Positions 1,529 through 40,795 of a DNA stretch of 64,000 nt are shown piece by piece (positions within the stretch are counted from its first letter, which is position 1; every line of letters begins with the position of its first letter). Under the pieces are notes generated by a model, which was given only the letters and a program-made list of their open reading frames with translations, ran no database searches and was not told the DNA's origin. This stretch comes from Eukaryota sp. TZLM1-RC (lineage: Eukaryota; Protista; Metamonada: BaSk clade). The translations under genes were made by a program, and so were the position numbers. The stretch covers positions 248,001 to 312,000 of the forward strand of contig JAUPSS010000012.1 of NCBI GenBank assembly GCA_040285825.1, given 5' to 3'.

Positions 1529-2437
1529 CTAAGCATAATGATCAGTAAGACCACTCCGAACTATCTTAAAAGCCAAATTATCAGAAATATACAGATTATT
1601 TTCCAGTGTTACCGTTAGGTTCAACTGGAACTGAATTCTAAAACCTTCGCCTTCAGTAGACGTACACACGAATAATTTTGGGAACAACAAAAATAAAGGA
1701 ATTTCAACTTTTTTGGGGGGATCATCATGAGCTATTTGAATGTTCATGATTTCAGTTGATTCTCTCATTCTATCCACCCCAGTACCAACAGTTTCCACTC
1801 TCAATAGCTGAGCTTCTATACTCTTGATTGAAGTGTCACAGCGATCAATGCGAAGAAATCCAGATAAAGGTTTGCAAATATCACAAACACCCTTGTCTAA
1901 CTGGCCAACAATAGAAAAGTCAGGTAGGGAATTAATAGCATCAGTGGAGCTTTTTTTGAGCGAATCACGACTTAAAGTAAAGGAGAGAGGTTTTTGGTCA
2001 ACTGGTACTTCTGGTGTGGGGTTGAAAACAAAGAATTCAACAGACTTCTCGAGAGATTTCGCGAAGAGTCCTCCTTGTATGTGGACAGTGGCTAAGTAGT
2101 TGACAGAGACATAAACACCTGAGTAGGATTCATAGAGAGTCTGTCCGTCAATGGGGTCGAGGGAAAATTGGAAGGGAAACTCAGTCTTGCCCTCGGGTAG
2201 TTTTTCTTGATATTGTAGAGGTATTTCTAGGTCAAGGATTTTCTTGGAGGATGATGAAGACAGGCTGTCCATGCTACCGTCTTTGGATGAATGTAAATTG
2301 AGAACTCCTTCTGCTTTGATAGTAATGCCCATGTGCTTGCGCTTGGACTCACAATCAATGATGACGGTACCATCCACAACATCGCCTGGACAAAAGGTAC
2401 CTGATTTATTATTGAAATTAATACTAATGGTAGGCAT
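1529..2437 (-). CDS. VPS26C: VPS26C/DSCR3 (retriever subunit, arrestin fold)
   Basis: LPEGKTEFPFQF, LYESYSGVYVSVNY, IKSIEAQLLRVET and ESTEIMNIQIAHDD match the DSCR3/VPS26C pattern; 302 aa. Confidence 0.9.
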   Translation of the reverse strand: MPTISINFNNKSGTFCPGDVVDGTVIIDCESKRKHMGITIKAEGVLNLHSSKDGSMDSLSSSSSKKILDLEIPLQYQEKLPEGKTEFPFQFSLDPIDGQTLYESYSGVYVSVNYLATVHIQGGLFAKSLEKSVEFFVFNPTPEVPVDQKPLSFTLSRDSLKKSSTDAINSLPDFSIVGQLDKGVCDICKPLSGFLRIDRCDTSIKSIEAQLLRVETVGTGVDRMRESTEIMNIQIAHDDPPKKVEIPLFLLFPKLFVCTSTEGEGFRIQFQLNLTVTLENNLYISDNLAFKIVRSGLTDHYA

Positions 2438-5604: not shown

Positions 5605-7708
5605 ATGTACCAACATCGCAAGTCTTCGCTTGCAGAGTCATTTCCACCATCTTTTGAGATTGATGCAGAAGAAAACCACGACTCTCTTTTAAGCGATGAT
5701 ATTGATAGCGATGAATCTATCAGCACAGCAAATGCGGCAATGACCCACCATGATAAATACCTCTCTGACCTCAAAGCGGTAGATGAAAGGGATGAAACAG
5801 AATCAACTCCCGGTATAGGACCTTACACTTCCTACCGACGTATTGTCATTCTCCCGGAGGATCAACCACTGACCCCTGAAGTGCAGGAGGCCTGTTCTCT
5901 CATCCATTCTCTCCTCCGCACCAGAGAACGCTATGTATACTCTGCCCCTTCATTCCCCCACACCTATCGCACCGACAAGCCTCCTGATATGGTGTTCTCT
6001 CTTATGCGAAACCTTCCTGAAGCTGTTGATGTCTCATTCTCCAGCACAAAGGGTATTTTCTCTGCTTCAATTACTTCTGAGGCATACACCTCCCCTCCCC
6101 TCCTTGAAGAGTATTTCTCTGATCTACACGCCTTGATGAGACTTGTTGGCTATGGTCCACTCAAAACCCTGGCCTACAGAAGACTTCAGTTCTTGGAAAC
6201 CAAATTCCACCTATACAGACTACTCAATGATGCTGATGAAAAAGCTGCTCAAAAAGAAGTTTGTTTGGTTTAAATACTCATTCTAGGTTCCGTATCGAGA
6301 CTTGTACAATGTTCGCAAGGTTGATAACCATATTCATGCATCAGCTGCTATGTCACACAGGTTCTTACTTCAATTTATGAAGGAAAAAATTGTTCACGAA
6401 CCTGATGAAATTGTGGCAGTGCATAATGGAAAAAAACTAACTCTAACAGAGGTGTTTGACGAGCTGAATATTTCGCCCACTGAGCTTTCTGTGGACGTGC
6501 TTGATGTACAAGCAGATCAGCATTTGTTCCATAGGTTTGATAGGTTCAACCAAAAGTACAATCCGTGTGGTCAGACAATGCTCAGGGAGATTTTCTTGAA
6601 GACTAACAACCACATAAATGGAAGGTACTTTGCTGAAATTCTTAAAAAGTACATCTTCTCACTTGAAGATCAAAAATACCAATCAGCAGAACTTCGACTT
6701 TCCATTTACGGAAAGGACCCAATGGAATGGGATCTGTTGGCCAGATGGTTCTTAGAATATGAAATGCAGTATAATCGAACTGTCAGATGGCTTATTCAAA
6801 TTCCTAGACTTTACTCCGTTTACAAGGAAGGCGGATTTATAGAAACCTTCTCTGACATGCTTTCCAACATTTTTCAACCCCTATTTGAGGTTACACAAAA
6901 CCCTAGCACACACCCTCATTTGCATTATTTCTTGCAATCGGTAGTTGGTTTTGATTCTGTTGATGATGAAAGCAAACCAGAAAGGAAGTTTTTTAGAAAG
7001 TTACCCCATCCTGATGATTGGGATTCAGCTGTTGATCCACCTTTTTCCTACTACATCTACTACATTTACGCTAATATTCACACTTTGAATTCCTTTAGGC
7101 ATTCCCGTGGTATGAATGTCTTTGCTTTTCGACCTCATGCTGGGGAAGCTGGTGATATAGAGCACTGTGCTGCTGCTTATATGTGTGCAAATAGTATTAA
7201 TCATGGAATCCAGTTGAGAAAAACACCAGTTTTGCAGTATTTGTTCTACCTCACTCAAATTGGAATGTCTGTTTCGCCATTGTCCAATAATTCACTGTTC
7301 TTGGATTATCACCGAAATCCCTTCCCAAACTTTTTCAAGACTGGGTTGAATGTTACCCTCTCTACTGATGACCCACTTCAATTCCATTTCACTCAAGAAC
7401 CTCTTACCGAAGAGTACTCCATTGCTGCACAGGTATGGAAGCTTTCAAGTGCCGATCTCTGTGAAATTGCTTGGAGATCTGTGCTAATTTCTGGTTTTGA
7501 TCATGAAACTAAGTCGGAGTGGCTGGGACCGAACTATTCCAAGCAACATGATGATGAAGATAGTATTCGCTTTACCAATGTTCCGAGAATTAGATCGGCA
7601 TTTAGGTCGGATTTATTGAAAAATGAGCAAGAGTTTATAGAAAAGGGGAGGAGGTTTGGTATTGATGGTAAAGATGACACACCGTTGGCTCCTACATCCA
7701 GGGTTTGA
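5605..7708 (+). CDS. AMPD: AMP deaminase, 2 exons (intron 6259-6286)
   Basis: YNVRKVDNHIH, FRPHAGEAG and LSTDDPLQFH motifs. A 28-nt GTTTGT..TAG intron joins the two ORFs in frame (QKE|VPYRDLYNVRK). Confidence 0.95.
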
Positions 7709-13384: not shown

Positions 13385-14450
13385 TATTTTTATTTTCAAC
13401 GATAACAAAACGTTAAAAAACTAGAACTCAATATCCTCAATACACGCATCAACATCATCAAATCTCTTAAGTGAGCGATTTTCATACTCTAATCCCAATT
13501 GTAACAGTGCTTTGGTTATGATTTCTGGAATTGCTTTAAGTATACTAAAAACAATTCTATTGTGCCAGAAATTAAAGTCCAATTCTTTTCTGCTCTTTCT
13601 TTTATGAAACATCAGAAACCTTCGAAAAAATTAATGCCAGACATTCCAATGTTACCAAAAAGAGAAACAGCAAACGGAACCAGCTGATACTTTACATGCT
13701 CAACACGTCTTAGCTGAGATAAGGGTTCGTTGTACTTTTTGATTTTGCTCTTTTCAGCAAAGCAAAGAGGAGTTTCATCCTTTTTAGCAAAATCAATTGC
13801 TGAATCCTTACAAACATCAACAGTGACAACATCAACAACTTTGATCACACTATTAGACCCAGGTGTAATTAAATCAGCACGGCGTTTCCCAAAAGTATTT
13901 TCATCTTCATTTTCAGGTGACAACTTACGCACAAGAGGTTCAACAAAAGCTTCAATGAAAGCCTTTTGCACATAGCGTACAGTTGGTCTCTAACAGCATC
14001 GTGAACAACTGAGCGATATGTAATATTAAATTTGCAATCAAATAAATGATTCAGATTGATAAGCTGACCACAACGACAAGTCAAATCATTTGGCTAACTG
14101 CACGGCCAAAGAATAAACCTCATTCCTAAGACAGTTGTCCATTGATGGTCATTTAACAAAATACCGTAAACTTTTGGAATTTGGGAACTGAGACAACTTG
14201 AGCTACTTTCCTTAAGATCAATTAAAAAGTTAGCAAAAATGGGATTCTTGTCCTTAGCCAAGCTAAGACGTACATCAAAATCCAAGTTTTCAAAAACTTT
14301 AAGTATTTTGTTCTACTATTTGGCGTATGTAAATCTGAAAGAAATCAAACTTCTGCGTGGAATTTGTTGAATATCGGTAGGACAGCATTTGCACCATATT
14401 TGAGGAGAGAGGCATGCGAATTCATTATACAAAGACACCAAATAAGCAAC
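13385..14450 (-). mobile_element. Degenerate 5'-truncated CRE-like element (family C)
   Basis: Frameshifted ORF pieces with CRCG..HLFDC, HDAVRD, EPL, RRAD, WHNRIVF, ending in EDIEF. Confidence 0.85.
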
Positions 14451-14489: not shown

Positions 14490-15020
14490 ATTTTAATATC
14501 TCCTCTGACATTCAACGTGCTTGATATGATGGAACTGAACTAATAATCGATGTTGTACCACTATATCTCCGTGGAAAAGCAGTTTTAATTCTGACTTTAA
14601 ACATTTACTTAAAGTTGCAGAACATTCCAGGAAATCAAAATACGAAATTCTTCTTCAACGTCTCAATCGAACAAGAAGTAGAAACATTAAATTTGTTCCA
14701 ATTGCTATATCAATTTTTGGTACCATTGGAAGGGAAGGTCTTTATTTTTTAGATCATTTAGGAAAACTTCTCAAAGAAGGTGGTCGCACATTTGATATTT
14801 TGATTTGGAAGAACAGAATCGTATTTTCGTTACTCAAAGCTCTTCCTCGTTATATTAACCGCATTTTGAATAACATTACGGAGTTTTATAACAATCAGGT
14901 TGCTATACAAGTGAATTGCGAAAATCTCCCGTCATTTAATTGATGGGGTAGGAGTAGGTAAAAGCATTAGTTAAGGTTTGTTGTTGAGTTGTAAAATGTG
15001 ACTGTTCCAGAAATAAAATT
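14490..15020 (+). mobile_element. Degenerate CRE-like element (family E)
   Basis: DGTELIIDV..WKNRIVFSLLKALPRYIN is readable in fragments; similar to 20470-21150. Confidence 0.7.
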
Positions 15021-15259
15021 TATTTCTCCTCTGTCGGTACTGTTGATGATCCAGATATTTTTATCCATTTATTTCCACATGAACTTTCAATGTTGTTTAC
15101 TTTTGATAATTGTTTAAATAATTATCAACCACCTTAGACTGGTTTCACCTTATATCCAAAAATAATTAAAGTTAACTTCAATAAAAATTACCAAATTTAG
15201 TTCGTGACCAAAACGTTCAAACAGTTTTTGCGGAGATTGCGGTTAATATTTTTTTATTA

Positions 15260-15405
15260 AATTTATTAAACAACTTATAAATCAACATTTAAATAATCCA
15301 TCTCTCCCAAAACAAAACAACTAGATACAACTCTCTCAGAGTGAGATCCAAGAGAAAGCAAAGCATCAGAAACCATCTTCAACATCGCCTCAATAATGGA
15401 AAACC
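15260..15405 (-). mobile_element. 3' stub of CRE-like family A
   Basis: Nucleotide match to 35350-35480 (MLKMVSDALLSLGS..MDYLNVDL). Confidence 0.8.
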
Positions 15406-15679: not shown

Positions 15680-18098
15680 ATTTATTTTTATTCAAACAAA
15701 ATTGTAAATAACTAAAAATCAATCTCCTCAAACTCCACATCTACTATTGAAAACTTACCTACAGCATTTTCTTCATAAAATTTGCCTAGTGATAACAACA
15801 AGCTAGAAACAAGGCTATACATTCCCTTAAAAATAGACACTACAATTCTGTTCTGACAGCAATCAGAATTATGATAGACAGCAAGCAGATCAAGATTTTG
15901 TAGAAGAAATCTTGGTTCAATGATAGTCGTCCCATTAGTTATGAGTTAATTTAATTAAGTGTGCAAATTCAATAAATTAAAGTTTTGCCAAAAGGTTCGG
16001 TCAAATATTCTTCCAGTATTATATATTTGACAATAAATGAGAAATTGTCCAAAAAAGATAACGCAGTTTTACCCAAGGTTTCAAATAAATAGTAGCAAAA
16101 GGACAAAGAAGATATTGAGTATGTGAGTTGGAATTCAGATTATTGATTTTTTCTGTGTACTTTATAATTTTCGCTTCTTCGACTCTACGTAGAGGTGAAT
16201 TATAAGACTGTGCCAGTTTTTCATTTGAGCTGTTTGATACATCAGTAGATCTGATATCAATAATGATCATTGATCCATCAGGTCCGGGAACTAGCACATC
16301 ACCACGGCTGTCACCAAATGAATTTCTGTCAGATTCATCAACCGGACTTGAAAGCAAAGGTTCTAAAAAAGATTCAATCTTGTAGGACTTAAACATACAA
16401 TATAGCTGATCACGAACTACATCATGCACTTTTGATCTCAAAGTAGTAAAACGATTACATTTAAATAAATGGCTTAGAGTGACAGTCTTTCCACAGTTAC
16501 AAATTAATCCATGAGGAAGATTATCAGGCCAATTAAAAGATCGAAAACGCATAGAAAATAAAAAGCAAGACCCATTGAGAAACAAACCATAATTTCTTGG
16601 TACTTGGTTATTTAAACAAATAAAAAATATATTAAGAATTATCACAAACATCCAGTAAAAATTTTGCAAAGGCGGGATTTGTGTGCTTAGCCATGCCAAG
16701 ACGTTCTTCATAATCTTAGCCTTCAAATATTACTGTCAGTTTTTGTTGAAGTTTCTTTACACAATACCTTAAATTCACTAAATTTCGTGGAGGAATCTCT
16801 TGAACTGAGTCGCAAAAACATTGACACCAAATTTCTGGTTCAATTTTATTAATGGCAACATCAAGGTCATACAAATATTTTGAAAATGATGGACTAAGCA
16901 AATGAATATCTTCAGGAAAACGATGGAGAAATTCAAAGATAATTTGTTTTCCACCACCAACAAAAGCTGCTTGACAAAGAATTGAAGATTTGGCAAAGCC
17001 AACACCTCCAAATTGTGAAGAAGAGAACAAGTGAGCTCGAATTAGCTTACGATTCGCTTCTAATAGGGAAGCAAAGAAAGTTGCACGAAGTTGATTAAAT
17101 GATCGGCAGAAATCGATAAACAATGAAGGTGCTGTCGACTTCAATAAGTGAGTAATTTTCCGGAGTAACAGATTTTTAAAATAAAAAATTTGATAATTAT
17201 TTCAATTTCTAATTCAGAAATAAATTGAAGCTCAGTGCCAAGTTTTGCAACAATTTCGTTAAGATTTTTAGTAATTTCATCAACATTTCCTAACGAACAT
17301 CCTAGAAAACGAAAAACATCTGGTGAATAATTGGTAAAAGGAATTCTACAATTATTAATTATAAACTCTTGGAAATCATTACCAATTAATGAACATTTTA
17401 TAGGATTCAAGTGAACCATTGAATCAAATTTTGATTCACCATTGTTACTTTTTGTAACCAATGATTTCATATTGTTCAGCAATTTGATTTGAAGCTTTTT
17501 GGACAACATCAAAAGGACCAATAAGGGAGATGCCATCCATGTAACCCACAATTTTGAGAGAAGGGTATTTTTCATTAATGACAATCAATGATTATTGGAC
17601 TGCTATGCAAAATAATAATGGATTTGAAGGATCCCTGTGTTTTACATCTGATGAAGACTTGAGAGAAAATACATCATATACTAATTCACTGGGTCTATCG
17701 TAAAACAAATAGAATCAACTTGATAGTTCAAGGAAATGTTTTTGAATTACTTCGTAAATTGCTTTTCTTTTTACACTATTAAAAGTGTTGCTAAAATCTA
17801 AATTGAAAATAAAATTGATTCCATGGGAGTTCAAGAACAAGTCTGGTGTCAGAGCAGCGACTGAAGCTCCATCAATCGTTTGAATCCCAAATTGCATTGG
17901 AGACAAAAATTTGCCAGCCTTTTTAACAATTCTATTAAATATAACTGAGGCAAACAAACGAGATAGAGATTCAACAGGTTTTACTAAAGCAATTAGACGT
18001 GCAGCAGTAAGCTCAGGAGGAGGAACGACTTTCAATGAAACCATTTGTTGAAAATATAAAGCTAAATCATCTGCAATTTCAGGTTTCTCATTGCAGGC
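15680..18098 (-). mobile_element. Degenerate CRE-like element (family B): RT plus RLE with many frameshifts, interrupted by a nested insert at ~15856-15981
   Basis: ARLIALVKP, LDFSNTFNSV, a decayed QG(D)P motif, MD motif, CNCG..HLFKC and RGDV, ending in EEIDF*. Colinear with ORF 35350..37851. Confidence 0.88.
15856..15981 (+). repeat. Short dispersed repeat (family G, 3' stub of a non-LTR element), nested in family B
   Basis: GACAGCAAGCAGATCAAGATTTTGTAGAAGAAATCTTGGTTCAATGA...CAATAAA; also found at ~35.2, 39.2 and 56.2 kb. Confidence 0.8.
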
Positions 18099-19044
18099 GA
18101 TATGGTGAAACCTATTTTATGAATGTTTGAACATGAACTAAATAGTATTCGAACTGTTGACTTCAACAGTATCAGTATCATCCTTAAAAAATTTGTTAAT
18201 GTTATATGTAATCCACTAAAAATTCAAAAAGTTGTTGAGGAAGATGTTGTTCAAGAGCTTGAGAATGAACAAGAGGAGTCAAACAAAGAAGTTGAAAAAT
18301 GGAACTCATTACTCATGGATTGACAGGCCACTGATGTGATTGCATTATCAGAGATTTTATCAATTTCAATCAGAGACAGACTATTATATCAGAAAATTCT
18401 GTTAAAGACGTTAACAACATATTCCCTTTGAAAAAATTCAACAGTGCACTTTTAAACTAAGCCAAACATCATTTAAAGCATCAATTGTTGGCGAGGTACA
18501 ATTCAATGAAATCATTGTTCATCCAATTTGCAACAGAATGCAAAAGTGTAAATGATATGCTTCAGCAAATGACTTCAAGTTGACCACCCCTAAATCCAAA
18601 GAGAAAGTCAAAGAATAATCAGTCAAATAGGACAAAGGTAAGGGAAATTTCTTACCAAATAAGTCAATCATATTGAGTCCACAGGAATCAATATGACTGA
18701 AGCAGAAAGAAAATAATGTGAAAAATTCAAACCAATAAGATGTGCATGGAAAAAATAAAGAAAAATTGAAAAAAACTAAAAACTAAGAATCCAAAAAAAA
18801 AGCATTTAATGAAAAAAAGACAAACTAATTATTGATTCCTACACTGCTGATAGAAAAAACATTGAACTTCAAACAGAGAAGTTGAGAGAAACGGAAACAA
18901 ATTACTTGAACTCGATCATTTTTAGGATTGAGAGCAGTGAATAATCCTTCAAAAATGAGGTTATAAAATAAAATAAAGGTGAAGAGGAAATCATTAAATC
19001 TCTTCCCAATTTCATTCCAAGAATTGAATTTACCATTTACGCAA

Positions 19045-19642
19045 GCCGAGGTATATATAAATAAATAAGAGAATGAGGCCGTTTGGGTTAACCGATTATA
19101 AGCAAAGTTGAAGGCTGATGCTCAACATATTGTAATAAGTTTTGGTGATTGGGACGCTGAGATAAACCAAAAAGGTAAATACCTCATAACCAGAGGTTAT
19201 GGGCTAAGAAGAATTGTGTGAAAGGCTGGCATACAAATATACTTGGTAGACGAGTATCGTACCAGTAAAAGATGTGTTGCTCGTGTTGAGGATCATCGCA
19301 AAGGTAATACCAAATGTGATGTAAAGGTCAAAGAATAAATACCTATAAAAGATTCCAACATAAGCAGAAGATGTTAAAGAATGACTTACGAGTGGCTAAA
19401 AAACAGTATCATGAAGTTGATCCTATTCAAAATCTTGAAAACAAAATTCAAGATCTTTAACACAATTGGAATCTAAAAAAAGTGGTGGTGTCAAACTAGC
19501 CCCATGCCAAGGACTGCTACACTGTCAAAACAGTGAATGTGGCGTCTATTGGGAAAGGTATGTTAGCAGTACTCTAATCATGTTCAGGATTACATACTCT
19601 CGTATTCATGATAATTGTAGACCAATGGTATTGTAGCAGTAA
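19045..19642 (+). pseudogene. Decayed Fanzor1 (TnpB-like RNA-guided endonuclease), C-terminal half
   Basis: Frame 1 reads YINK*ENEAVWVNRL*AKLKADAQHIVISFGDW..KGKYLITRGYGLRRIV*KAGIQIYLVDEYRTSKRC. Frame 2 reads CQGLLHCQNSECGVYWERYVSSTLIMFRI..RPMVL*. These match the GDW, RuvC-II (VDEYRTS..C), Zn-finger and RuvC-III (W.RD....N) motifs of Fanzor1. Confidence 0.85.
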
Positions 19643-19770
19643 GTGTGGGAATGAATGTTAAGAGTATTGGAATTTCCAATAAATAAATAAATAAATCTTA
19701 ATTCCAATTTGGAATTAAGATTTATTAGCACACGAATCCACGGAATTGATACATTTTTTGAGTCACCAAC

Positions 19771-20340
19771 ATGCACTCCATTTCTTTACTGATAGCGGGG
19801 GATGCTAGTACAGGCAAGACATCTATTCTACACACCTTCTTGAACGGCGAATTTCCTACATCTTCTGTTGCGACGATTGGTGTGAACTACCTTACTCGTA
19901 ATGTGACAATAAATGATTCATCCATCTCCCTTAAGCTCTACGACAGCTCTGGTCAGGACAGGTATCGCAGTCTCACCATGAGTTCCTTCCGTCAAGTTCA
20001 ATCCGTAGTTTTTGTTTTTGATGTCACCAGCCGAGCCAGTTTTGAATCTCTTCAAACTTGGATCACTGACGCCATGAACTACTGTCCAGAAGACTTTATT
20101 GGAGTAATTGTTGGCAACAAGACAGACCTTCAACAACACAGACAAGTAGAGACAATTCAAGCTGAAAAGTTTGCTGAACAGTTCAACATGGCGTACATTG
20201 AGACTTCGGCAAAGAAGAATCAGCGCATTTCTGAAGTTTTTGAAACTATTGCGAGCCAGTACCTGGAGAATGGTGTTTTCGACAATACACCTGAGTCTAA
20301 CGTAGAGTTGAGTAGTACGAGGACCAGATGTGGTTGTTGA
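19771..20340 (+). CDS. Rab-family small GTPase (divergent)
   Basis: GDASTGKTS, YDSSGQDRYRSL, GNKTDL, ETSAK and a C-terminal CGC prenylation motif. Confidence 0.92.
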   Translation: MHSISLLIAGDASTGKTSILHTFLNGEFPTSSVATIGVNYLTRNVTINDSSISLKLYDSSGQDRYRSLTMSSFRQVQSVVFVFDVTSRASFESLQTWITDAMNYCPEDFIGVIVGNKTDLQQHRQVETIQAEKFAEQFNMAYIETSAKKNQRISEVFETIASQYLENGVFDNTPESNVELSSTRTRCGC

Positions 20341-20469
20341 TTTTCTTAGTGTTATTGTTTAGTTATTGTACATTTCAGTTTTAAAGGGTTTTTTGGTTTT
20401 TTTATGCTTTAGTCTTTTTAGGAAAAGTATACTTCTGTTATTGAGAATTTGTGTTGTATTACCTTTTTT

Positions 20470-21150
20470 CAGATATTCGATTTTTGACAATCATGCGAAT
20501 CAGACTTAATCTACCTCCTCCTCAATGCTCATCAAATATGAAATGTAAATGTGGTGCTCATGCTTCTTTTGATCACCTTATTTCCTGCTGTAAATCACTC
20601 AAAAAAGATCAATTATCCTGGATAATTACGAACTGCATTGTGGATAATTTATCCACAATGCAGTTCGTGATTGTATTGATGATCTTCTAAAATGTGCTCA
20701 TCATGCAATTCGTTTGAAACCTCTGTTTGATGAATCAAATTTCAGTTTGAGCCAAAAACGAGGTGATATTCAATGCGTTGGTATGATGGAACTGAACTAA
20801 TTATCGATTGTACTACCGTATCTCCACCGAAAAGGCGTTCCAATTCCGACATTTAACATTTACTCAAAGTTACTGAGCTTTCCAAGAAATCTTTGGGAAA
20901 ACTTCTGACTGAAAGCGGTACATTTGATTTTTTGATTTGAAAGAACAGAATTGTATTTTCGTAACTGAAAATATTCCTCGTTATATTAACTCCATTTTGA
21001 ATAACATTACGGAGTTTTATAACAAGCGAATTCTTATTCAAGTAAATAGCGAAAGCCTCCCGTCATTCAATTGATGGGGTTTTTAGTAGGTAAAAGCATT
21101 AGTTGAGGTTTTTGGTTAAGTTTTAAAATGTGCCTGTTCCAGCAATACTT
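20470..21150 (+). mobile_element. Degenerate CRE-like element (family E)
   Basis: MRIRLNL..CKCG..HLISCC, HNAVRD, KRGDI and KNRIVF; the 3' part is nearly identical to 14520-15010. Confidence 0.78.
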
Positions 21151-21628: not shown

Positions 21629-22373
21629 ATGTCCAACTTGAGGTAAGTTCTTCAATTGTTGAACACAGGAGGAAATGGTGCAGGGGTATTGTTATCGTGC
21701 TAATCATTGTTGCTATTGGGGTCTTTTTCACAAACAATACTCGCCCACGCCTTTATACACGATTCCAGGTCTCCGAAGATTGGATTACTGGTGATGGAAT
21801 ACTAGTAACAGAGACTTTTTCAGTCGACATTATCAATCGACTGATGTACGAATAACTACAGCATGATGGTGAGATAATTCAACTGTGGTACAATTCGGAA
21901 GATGGAGAAACATTTTACATCAATATCAATGATCAAAACGGTACATGTTATCGGTGGACCTCACCCAAACGGTCAGTATCACTTGACATAATGTTCTCCT
22001 ACTTCCTACCCACGGCTGATGCAGAAAGAAGCGACAGCCAAATCTATGCTGATCTTCAAGATTGGTGTCAAGTTTACACATCAACTAGGAAAGCAGATAT
22101 CCCTTTCTTCCAGCATAACCAACTGACCTTCTTTTGGTGTGTCAAAGACAGATTTGTACACTCTCTATCAATCCACTCACCCACACTTATCAACACTTCA
22201 TTGTTTTACAATCACATGTATGAAATTACTCTTACACTGATCACAGAGCATTGAGCAGGACTGATCAACGGTTTGCATACCACAGAATTTGCCACAACGT
22301 AATCCACCTGGAAGATGAACCACGTTTCCCGTACATGAACACACTACTTGACCGCGAAAGATTCAAAGTTTGA
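21629..22373 (+). pseudogene. Ependymin-like membrane-anchored protein, paralog of 46713..47478, with an in-frame TAA at 21853 (introns 21643-21668, 22218-22246)
   Basis: YFLPTADAERSDS..CQVY..WCVKDRFVH aligns with YALPTDDAEKKDS..CDVY..WCVADRFVH. Both intron positions are shared with the paralog; one premature stop. Confidence 0.75.
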
Positions 22374-24414: not shown

Positions 24415-24755
24415 ATTTATTTAATATAAAGAATTTATAAATCAACATCTAAATAATCCATCGCTCCCAAAACACAACAAGTAGATGCAACTCTCTCATA
24501 ATAAGATCCAAGAGAAAGCAGAGCATCAGAAAACATCTTCAACATCGCCTTAAAAATAGAAAACACAATTCTATTTTGCCAAAACAATTTGTTCAAATTT
24601 CGATTGGTTCTTTTCTTTACAATCATTTCAAAATCTGCCAAAAAAACGTAAAACGGAGGGGGTCAGTGATCCAAATAGAGAAAATACAAATGGATACAAA
24701 TTGTATTTTGTATGCTGTTGGGTAGACAATTTGGGCAAATGTTCACTGTATTTTT
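24415..24755 (-). mobile_element. CRE-like family A 3' fragment
   Basis: DFEMIVKKRTNRN..WQNRIVFSIFK..MDYLDVDL; nucleotide match to 35350-35670. Confidence 0.85.
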
Positions 24756-24832: not shown

Positions 24833-25390
24833 TTATTCCAAATCAGCCAAAAAGTATTGACTGGAACTTTTTGCTTCATAAAAGCGACCAAGAAATGATA
24901 TATCAGAAGATAATAAGGGCACAACACCTTTATAAATTGAAAATACAATTCTGTTCTGCCAAAACGTTTTGTCAAAAATTCTTCCTGTACGTTGTTTCAC
25001 AATTTCAATAAAATCAGCCATGAAAGATAAAGCATGTGGTCCAAGCGTGTCATGTAGGGAAAAAGCCAATGGACAAAGGAATTAATGAGTATGCGATTCA
25101 GCATTCAAGGATATCAACTTTGCTCTACATTTATCAACTTTAGAAATTTCGGCAACAGACTGCAAATTCCTGTCTTTTGACTGAGCCAACGGTATAAAAG
25201 AATTATTACACACATCAGTCGATCTCACATCAGTAATGATAGTCGTCCCTTCATGAGCTTCAAGCATTAAATCACCTCTATTTCGACCAATAGAATTCAA
25301 AGTATCTTTTCCTATTTTCAGGTAATGTTGAAGTTTGCTTCTGGTGCAATACCTTCTCTCGGATTTCACTATGACAGAGTTGCATCCAGT
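24833..25390 (-). mobile_element. CRE-like family B2 3' fragment
   Basis: RGDLML..ITDVRSTDVC and RTGRIFDKTFWQNRIVFSIYKG. Confidence 0.8.
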
Positions 25391-26318
25391 ATTTTGTAAG
25401 GAAAGATGAATTATTTAAATGTTCATTTATAGAGATATATAGAATAACGCTATATGCATCAATCATATCAGTGATCATCATTTATCATTGATGTTGTACA
25501 ATTACAAATTGATGTGGGAGATGCGAAAATGATTGCTTATAATATAACAAAGGACTATTGTTTAGCCGGTATTTCTATCAGGATACCCCTATCTTTGGCT
25601 GTGTAATATTATATATATCTGTGTAATATCATCGTCTTTCTTAAAAACTGACTATTGGGTGACATATTGTAGGGTAGTGTGGCGAATAGTCATCAAAAGA
25701 CACAATCAGAACAACAGAGAAAACGAGTTAAGGAAAGAATGCGGCTATGACCTTGTATTGTTGAGTGAGAGTGGGACTGACCCAATATGCAACATGAGTC
25801 TGACGTAACATGAAAACAATTGTTGAAATAAGAAGCCAACTCGGCCGACAAGACACAGAAGAGTAGAATCTTCCATAGTAATTCCACAAGGGAAAGACTA
25901 CACGTCAAAGAACTGTGTCTTGCCACAAGTCATCATCACTGGCCTTGGTGTTGTCTATTTTTGAAAAGACAAACGAAAGAATACACTATAGAAATGATCC
26001 TGATAGAGTATAATCGTTATAAGATAATGGAGGAGTTGATTCAATTAGTACTGACACAAAAATTCGCGTTGCACTGAGCGTGGAAAAAATTCATTTCATT
26101 TTATTGAATTCGATATTACTGAACAGGGAATGACAACTTTCACAAAAACGCATCAACATTGATAGAATCAAGATGTTCAATCACCATTACACTTAGATCA
26201 AATTAAATGTAATTTTCTCCGTCAGCTTTAATCTTGTGATTTTCAGAATTGATTTCTTTTTATTAACATTAAGTGAAATACAGCAGTCTTATTGTTCTTA
26301 TATAAATAACATGACCAC

Positions 26319-39995: not shown

Positions 39996-40795
39996 AATGT
40001 TTCATTTCCCAGATTCCGAATGTATATAGTTTATTATTAAATGATCATCAATGGGCAACTGCCTTCAGGATGAGGTGTGTTCTGTGGCCATGTGGTGTGC
40101 CAAATGATTTGATTTGTCGTTGTGGTCAGCTCATCAATCTCAATCATTTATTGAATTGCAAATTTAATATTACATATCACTCAGTTGTTCAAGATGCTGT
40201 TAGAGACCAACTATACGCTATGTGCAAAAGTAATCACATTGAAGCTTTTGTTGAACCACTTGTGCGAAGGTTGTCATCTGAAAGTGAAGATGAAAATACC
40301 TATGTGAAACGACGTGCTGATTTAATTACCCCTCTGACTGATGGTGTGATTAATATTCTTGATGCTATCACTGCTGATGTTTGTAAAGACTCAGCAATTG
40401 ATTTTGCTTAAAAAGATGAAACTCCACCTTGCTTTGCCGAAAAGAGTAAAATCAAAAAGTACAATGAACTCTTATCTCAGCTAGGATGTGTTGAGCATGT
40501 CAAGTATCAGCTGGTTCCATTTGCTATTTCTCCTTTTCGTAACATGGAATTGAAGGTTTCAGAAGTTGAATAAAAGAAAGAGCAGGAAAAGAATTGAACT
40601 TCAATTTCTGGCACAATAGAATTGTTTTCAGTATTCTTAAAGCAATTCCAGAAATGTTGACCAAAGCACTGTTACAATTAGGAATAGAGTATGAAAATCG
40701 TGCGCTTAAAAGATTTGATGATGTTGATGCGTGTATTGAGGATATTGAGTTCTAAATTTTTTGTTTAATGTGTTGTTAGTGTTGAAAATAAATTT
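39996..40795 (+). mobile_element. CRE-like family C 3' fragment
   Basis: CRCGQLINLNHLLNCK..DAVRD..RRADL..EDIEF; inverted homolog of 13421-14190. Confidence 0.88.

Follow-up and report, generated by a model that had tools for sequence, protein, structure and literature searches.

The window, by which we mean the whole 64-kb stretch of DNA analysed here (assembly GCA_040285825.1), carries apparently intact genes for a Vps26-like protein, an AMP deaminase and a Rab-type GTPase, copies of a LINE-like element and, between one of these copies and the Rab gene, a remnant that we assign to Fanzor1 (Table 1). The remnant corresponds to the C-terminal ~190 codons of a gene read on the plus strand (19048-19633, from frame translation of the window), and over these 590 nt its reading frame meets four in-frame stops and shifts twice. 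In frame 1 (19048-19335), EVYINK is followed by a TAA (19066-68), ENEAVWVNRL, another TAA (19099-101) and then HIVISFGDW...GYGLRRIV, after which a TGA (19219-21) precedes KAGIQIYLVDEYRTSKRC and a third TAA (19336-38) closes the frame. Frame 2 is open at 19439-19633, contains CQGLLHCQNSECGVYWERYVSSTLIM and NCRPMVL, and ends with a TAG (19634-36) about five codons short of the C-terminal end of the relatives described below. A frameshift-aware alignment places the two frameshifts at about 19336 and about 19449, on either side of segment 2.

The first segment holds the helix preceding RuvC-II, the FGDW strand, the KG...G.GLR linker, the VDEYRTSKRC motif and the start of a zinc ribbon; in the third, HCQNSEC forms the second pair of the zinc ribbon and NCRP is the C-terminal motif. 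The pattern [DE][EP]x(1-2)TS[KQR]xC occurs a single time in the six-frame translation of the entire 64 kb. Frame translation reproduced, at the same coordinates, all the motifs that an earlier note on this DNA had quoted in order from 19045-19642. That note had also remarked that the gene was absent from the list of open reading frames; the stop-free pieces are ORFs of only 31-56 aa, and the remnant is therefore missing from a listing with a floor of 60 aa.

Table 1. Positions of the genes, repeats and Fanzor1-related features of the window
Feature	Position	Strand	Remarks
Vps26-like protein, apparently intact	1529-2437	-	
AMP deaminase, split over two adjacent ORFs, apparently intact	5605-7708	+	E 2e-217, larger ORF
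LINE-like reverse-transcriptase (RT) copy, 5'-truncated, decayed	16336-18101	-	~65% identical to full-length RT ORF
Remnant, segment 1	19048-19335	+	frame 1; profile positions 444-544 of 602
Piece 1, match to A1 profile	19102-19218	+	profile positions 466-497, E 7.9e-4
Gly codon of FGDW	19144-19146	+	canonical RuvC-II glutamate position; near-invariant F-G-D-W column of family
Piece 2, match to A1 profile	19222-19335	+	profile positions 500-524, E 7.4e-7
GAG, relocated catalytic Glu in VDEY, intact	19252-19254	+	invariant column E520 of A1
First zinc-ribbon pair	19273-19284	+	invariant columns C527, C530 of A1; CAAC in P0001
Remnant, segment 2	19338-19448	+	frame 0; Lys/Glu-rich insert separating the two zinc-ribbon halves
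Piece 3, match to A1 profile	19439-19633	+	profile positions 540-587, E 9e-9
Remnant, segment 3	19451-19633	+	frame 2; HCQNSEC, eroded RuvC-III, NCRP motif
TAT (Tyr) replacing RuvC-III catalytic Asp	19559-19561	+	invariant column D559 of A1
Rab-type GTPase gene, apparently intact	19771-20340	+	Ras family, E 4e-49; downstream of remnant
Full-length LINE-like RT ORF, 833 aa	35350-37851	-	RVT_1, E 4.5e-22

About 950 bp of A-rich sequence separates the decayed LINE-like copy from the remnant, and short fragments of the 3' end of the LINE-like element lie at 15249-15404, 24416-24564 and 25307-25431. Direct repeats of ~80-84% identity (14506-15015 and 20764-21147) flank the LINE-like copy, the remnant and the Rab gene together, and a pair of inverted repeats with 84.5% identity is found at 13389-14195 and 39998-40792. 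By its Rab protein the window maps to contig JAUPSS010000012.1 of the assembly. The GC content of the window is 35.7%; S. litria has 35.8% and strain GEMRC 36.9% according to the Skoliomonas genome paper, which puts repeats at 48-55%. This GC content, and an accession number adjacent to that of the Skoliomonas sp. RCL assembly, suggest that the DNA may belong to a second Skoliomonas sequenced within one project. Between the remnant and the Rab gene lies a perfect 18-bp palindrome (19690-19726, arms AATAAATCTTAATTCCAA / TTGGAATTAAGATTTATT, 1 nt apart), which is unique in the window, lies 45 nt ahead of the Rab start codon and contrasts in its perfection with the decayed remnant alongside. This palindrome, unrelated to a guide RNA, drives the fold z-score of -2.8 obtained for 19500-19770. 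In the 3' flank of the remnant we recognised no transposon end, target-adjacent motif or guide-RNA scaffold, an Rfam scan of 18000-20500 gave only sub-threshold chance matches, and comparison of this flank with those of the copies from Skoliomonas sp. RCL showed no similarity outside the coding part. A candidate second remnant on the minus strand near 22080-22200 (VLISVGEW ... KKGISAFLVD) was rejected, as the family profile has no match there.

Relationship of the remnant to Fanzor1

Fanzor1 is a eukaryotic, transposon-borne family of RNA-guided DNA nucleases. For database searches the stop-free pieces of the remnant were queried separately, and in profile tests they were also read through, with X at the breaks. 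Plain phmmer searches of each piece against PDB sequences gave no match to a Fanzor or TnpB, the NCBIfam scan gave no match to any model, neither of the two yielding a direct significant match to TnpB or Cas12f, and a search among viral contigs with a piece of the remnant found no relative. A word-index search with the third piece gave no candidate, as its length filter would lead one to expect, and has no bearing on full-length relatives. The second piece does match the Pfam family PF07282 (Cas12f1-like_TNB, E 0.0073). In the ESM Atlas, the language-model neighbours of the second and third pieces, queried separately, are fragment clusters from giant viruses and Mucoromycota (zygomycetes), several of which carry PF07282; we treat this neighbourhood as a lead only.

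The third piece, searched with phmmer against 1.84 billion representatives, returned two proteins, P0001 (366 aa, E 3.3e-8) and P0002 (114 aa, E 5e-4). P0001 exceeds the Pfam threshold for the TNB domain and shows the motif order of the remnant, with VIGFGDW, FLVDEYRTSKQCAAC, a long Lys/Glu-rich stretch, HCQNSECSIYWNRD and ENCRP. Used as a query in turn, it retrieved 20 relatives of 270-640 aa, mostly with PF26935 and PF07282, and the alignment A1 of P0001 and these relatives (P0001-P0021, 602 positions) served as family profile. This profile matches SpuFz1, the Fanzor1 of Spizellomyces punctatus, over nearly its full length (8GKH, E 1.7e-82), as well as PpFz1 from Parasitella parasitica (9CF0, E 8.8e-77) and GtFz1 from Guillardia theta (9CER, E 1.6e-48), and the family of the remnant is therefore Fanzor1; LaTranC, at about 5e-4, was the sole nuclease matched besides the Fanzor1 structures. 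In SpuFz1 the motifs TDG, IDPN, GDW, LLDEYKTS..C..C, HGLL.C, WNRD and RP all align with those of the profile. Since the single pieces match neither a solved Fanzor nor an NCBIfam model, the link of the remnant to Fanzor1 passes through this profile of intermediates.

The remnant itself spans roughly positions 444-588 of the 602 in the profile. Of the 2,690 segments without stops in the six-frame translation of the window, its three pieces score best and are colinear, the fourth-ranked segment reaching only E 0.49, and reading 19048-19362 through, each stop being replaced by X, gives 60.4 bits (E 4.2e-20). The check that the earlier note had called for, a profile search with the stitched peptide, thus came out in favour of its assignment to the C-terminal half of Fanzor1. 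As a guard against circularity the profile was rebuilt without P0001, P0002 and P0003: the pieces still ranked as the top three of 2,690 (E 1.7e-6, 9.6e-5 and 8.9e-3), with E 4.6e-17 for the read-through. Tblastn of P0001 against the window gave two further colinear matches, for its residues 178-264 (E 1.3e-14) and 319-361 (E 1.1e-11, 51% identity).

Catalytic site, zinc ribbon and lesions

The RuvC-II glutamate named by the earlier note is present in the remnant, at a place that differs from the canonical one. The canonical position is occupied by the Gly of FGDW, and the catalytic Glu is the relocated one of VDEY, 36 residues further on. A rearranged site with Gly or Pro at the canonical RuvC-II position and a substitute Glu about 45 residues downstream has been described for Fanzors, canonical TnpB having Glu where the remnant and the Fanzors have Gly (PMC10530073). 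The FGDW Gly and the VDEY Glu of the remnant are this rearranged site. Prokaryotic TnpB (the OMEGA nuclease of IS200/IS605) and Cas12f share with the remnant the TNB zinc ribbon (PF07282) and the RuvC architecture. With both homology to Fanzor1 and the rearranged RuvC-II found, the remnant is a member of Fanzor1 by descent.

The other elements of the active site are lost or eroded. RuvC-III reads WERYVSSTLIM against a consensus of WNRDVNGATNI: reading of the sequence and the A1 column agree with the earlier note that a TAT codon stands in place of the catalytic Asp, and the conserved N557, N561 and N565 are replaced by Glu, Ser and Ile. In the zinc ribbon, the first Cys of the first pair is retained (TGT, 19273-75) and the second has become Arg (CGT, 19282-84), which leaves three of the four ligands and an incomplete four-Cys ribbon. 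Among the invariant residues of A1, the remnant keeps the Asp-Glu of VDEY, an Arg, a Thr, the first Cys and a Gly; further on, the two Cys of the second pair, the NRD Arg and the RP-motif Pro are kept as well. Two of the stops, those at 19099-101 and 19219-21, face Lys and Lys/Arg of the relatives within conserved blocks, and we therefore regard them as point nonsense mutations.

RuvC-I and the whole N-terminal two thirds, comprising the WED/REC half, are absent from the window, in line with the earlier note. Neither the A1 profile nor tblastn with P0001 matched profile positions 1-443 anywhere in the window, a motif search found no RuvC-I motif (IDPG/IDPN) near the remnant on the plus strand, and beyond the upstream LINE-like copy there was no profile or motif match to the N-terminal half. 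The damage even exceeds that listed when the copy was first called dead, with four stops, two frameshifts, the change of the RuvC-III Asp to Tyr and the loss of three Asn, and the change of a zinc Cys to Arg. Without RuvC-I, the RuvC-III Asp, a four-Cys ribbon or an open frame, the remnant cannot be a functional Fanzor1 nuclease; SpuFz1 is a proven RNA-guided nuclease, and in the remnant two of the three catalytic residues are lacking. We conclude that 19048-19636 (+) is very probably a non-functional, 5'-truncated fragment of a Fanzor1 pseudogene.

Relatives in Skoliomonas sp. RCL

Skoliomonads are a little-studied lineage of free-living anaerobic metamonads from soda lakes. P0001 (RCL1_007715) and P0003 (RCL1_008286) are annotated as hypothetical proteins of Eukaryota sp. 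TZLM3-RCL (GCA_040285805.1), which is Skoliomonas sp. RCL, a metamonad of the BaSk clade (Skoliomonas genome paper), and all skoliomonad proteins returned by searches of the protein collection with the P0001 family come from this genome. They resemble the remnant in the order and spacing of their motifs, in a long Lys/Glu-rich insert and in identical HCQNSEC and NCRP motifs. Unlike the remnant, they possess GIDPN (RuvC-I), WNRD (RuvC-III) and all four Cys, whereas the remnant is truncated and broken and belongs to another genome (GCA_040285825.1).

The frameshift-aware alignment lays 19072-19633 on residues 178-361 of P0001, with 184 aligned residues and equal length. Among all relatives, a long insert between the halves of the zinc ribbon occurs only in the remnant, P0001 and P0003; the linker between the halves measures about 35 aa in SpuFz1 versus about 76 aa in the subfamily of the remnant. 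The unusual length of this segment, already remarked upon in the earlier note, is thus real, and given the equal length with P0001 and the sharing of the insert with P0001 and P0003 it represents a lineage-specific insert in the protein. An intron or foreign DNA at this place was rejected, as the same insert is found in P0001 and P0003. On the profile columns the remnant is 41-43% identical to P0001 and P0003, versus 29-37% to the others. This closeness to the RCL proteins, together with the common insert, places the remnant and its source gene in a skoliomonad-specific subfamily of Fanzor1, distinguished by a Lys/Glu-rich insert of ~40-50 residues in the TNB domain.

The RCL genome contains Fanzor1 copies at L001:4146-7132 and L004:8315-11291, each of ~3.0 kb and with 92% DNA identity to each other, whose mutual homology stops 31 nt past the stop codon. 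GIDPN (RuvC-I) is encoded directly upstream of the annotated start of P0001. Each copy consists of three open segments with two frame breaks at similar places. Between the copies, the three segments have dN/dS values of 0.33, 0.31 and 0.21, dS being about 0.17, and this range of 0.21-0.33 implies purifying selection after the duplication; it also suggests that the breaks may be introns, perhaps micro-introns. This pattern indicates that the Fanzor1 family has, as judged from substitution patterns, been under selection recently in Skoliomonas sp. RCL. The earlier proposal that the lineage carries or carried a Fanzor family is borne out by the remnant, which is Fanzor1; as regards intact copies, it is borne out for Skoliomonas sp. 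RCL, by the apparently intact, selected copies there.

The L001 copy follows a PolB-exonuclease ORF at a distance of 8 nt, and one of the RCL copies has a hAT-like fragment nearby. The RCL genome also encodes proteins in which the proofreading exonuclease of family-B DNA polymerases (PF03104) is fused to a Fanzor1-like C-terminal half (L004:15858-19511; P0022, P0023 and P0024). These fusions measure 1,046-1,217 aa, match the Fanzor1 profile with E 4.5e-58 and have NRN instead of xRD as their RuvC-III motif. Their clusters comprise 30, 19 and 14 member sequences, which indicates a multi-copy family in Skoliomonas sp. RCL.

Alternative readings, history and significance

Every motif of the remnant is short, and the single pieces match nothing in the PDB or NCBIfam, as might be expected of chance resemblances in AT-rich non-coding DNA. 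Three independent pieces nevertheless outscore all the others of the 2,690 segments and are correctly ordered and spaced, and the read-through value (E 4e-20) as well as the tblastn values (E 1e-14 and 1e-11) contradict such a coincidence, which we consider negligibly probable. A true homolog could in turn descend from another branch of the TnpB superfamily, be it Fanzor2/IS607-type, a giant-virus TnpB or a prokaryotic TnpB introduced by contamination or recent transfer. The PF07282 match would fit this equally well, the TNB domain being generic and common to the whole superfamily, and the Atlas neighbours of the pieces are mainly giant-virus fragment clusters. Yet the family profile matches Fanzor1 structures at E 1e-82 to 1e-48 and LaTranC only at about 5e-4, the genes most closely related to the remnant are nuclear and come from Mb-scale contigs of a sister eukaryote, and the remnant has a LINE-like element on one side and a eukaryotic Rab gene on the other, in DNA of uniform composition. 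An origin outside Fanzor1 is therefore very improbable.

We hold it to be just as improbable that the locus is a live gene whose stops and frame changes are spliced out as micro-introns or read under an unusual genetic code. In the RCL copies the two similarly placed frame breaks, as possible introns, lend this idea some plausibility, but excising the stops at 19099-101 and 19219-21 would remove conserved residues from the remnant. An unusual code is opposed by the fact that both TAA and TGA act as breaks, and that many ORFs, one of them of 1,472 aa, are open when read in the standard code. Splicing could not repair the substitutions of the catalytic Asp, of three conserved Asn and of one zinc Cys, and RuvC-I is absent from the window. 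A decayed fragment of a Fanzor1 gene thus stays our preferred reading.

How the intact parent may have worked we infer from its homology to SpuFz1 and to the Fanzors tested in PMC10530073. It would have possessed a single RuvC nuclease composed of the RuvC-I Asp, the relocated Glu of VDEY and the RuvC-III Asp; the 3' end of the transposon-borne gene itself would have given rise to the guide RNA, and the nuclease would have cut matching DNA beside a short target-adjacent motif. The copy seen here first lost the N-terminal two thirds, including RuvC-I, by truncation, and later drift brought the four nonsense codons and the two frameshifts and cost it the RuvC-III Asp with the neighbouring Asn and one zinc ligand. 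The remnant can encode no nuclease and, as far as can be seen, no guide RNA.

Fanzor1 is a widespread and described family, for which PMC10530073 counts 3,655 unique sequences from eukaryotes and viruses. Where the earlier note had envisaged an undescribed RNA-guided system, intact copies would rather be new members of Fanzor1 than a system of an undescribed kind. What is new here is a host lineage for a known family, and the lineage-specific insert is the sole structural novelty; a literature search returned no paper pairing Fanzor with Metamonada. We put forward tentatively, as a possibility to which we give slightly less than even weight, that skoliomonads harbour a living, lineage-specific Fanzor1 subfamily whose TNB domain has an additional, helical insert of ~40-50 residues, and that intact, active copies of it exist in both genomes. 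If this is true, the remnant marks for the first time a host lineage not reported before and a structural variant of Fanzor1.

In terms of annotation, the identification accounts for an otherwise anonymous 600-bp stretch upstream of the Rab GTPase gene. The dead fragment itself is without function, and its value is that of a marker for the residence of Fanzor1 in skoliomonads. The RCL copies would widen the known host range of Fanzor1 and, with their unusual zinc-ribbon insert, are candidates for testing as compact genome-editing nucleases.
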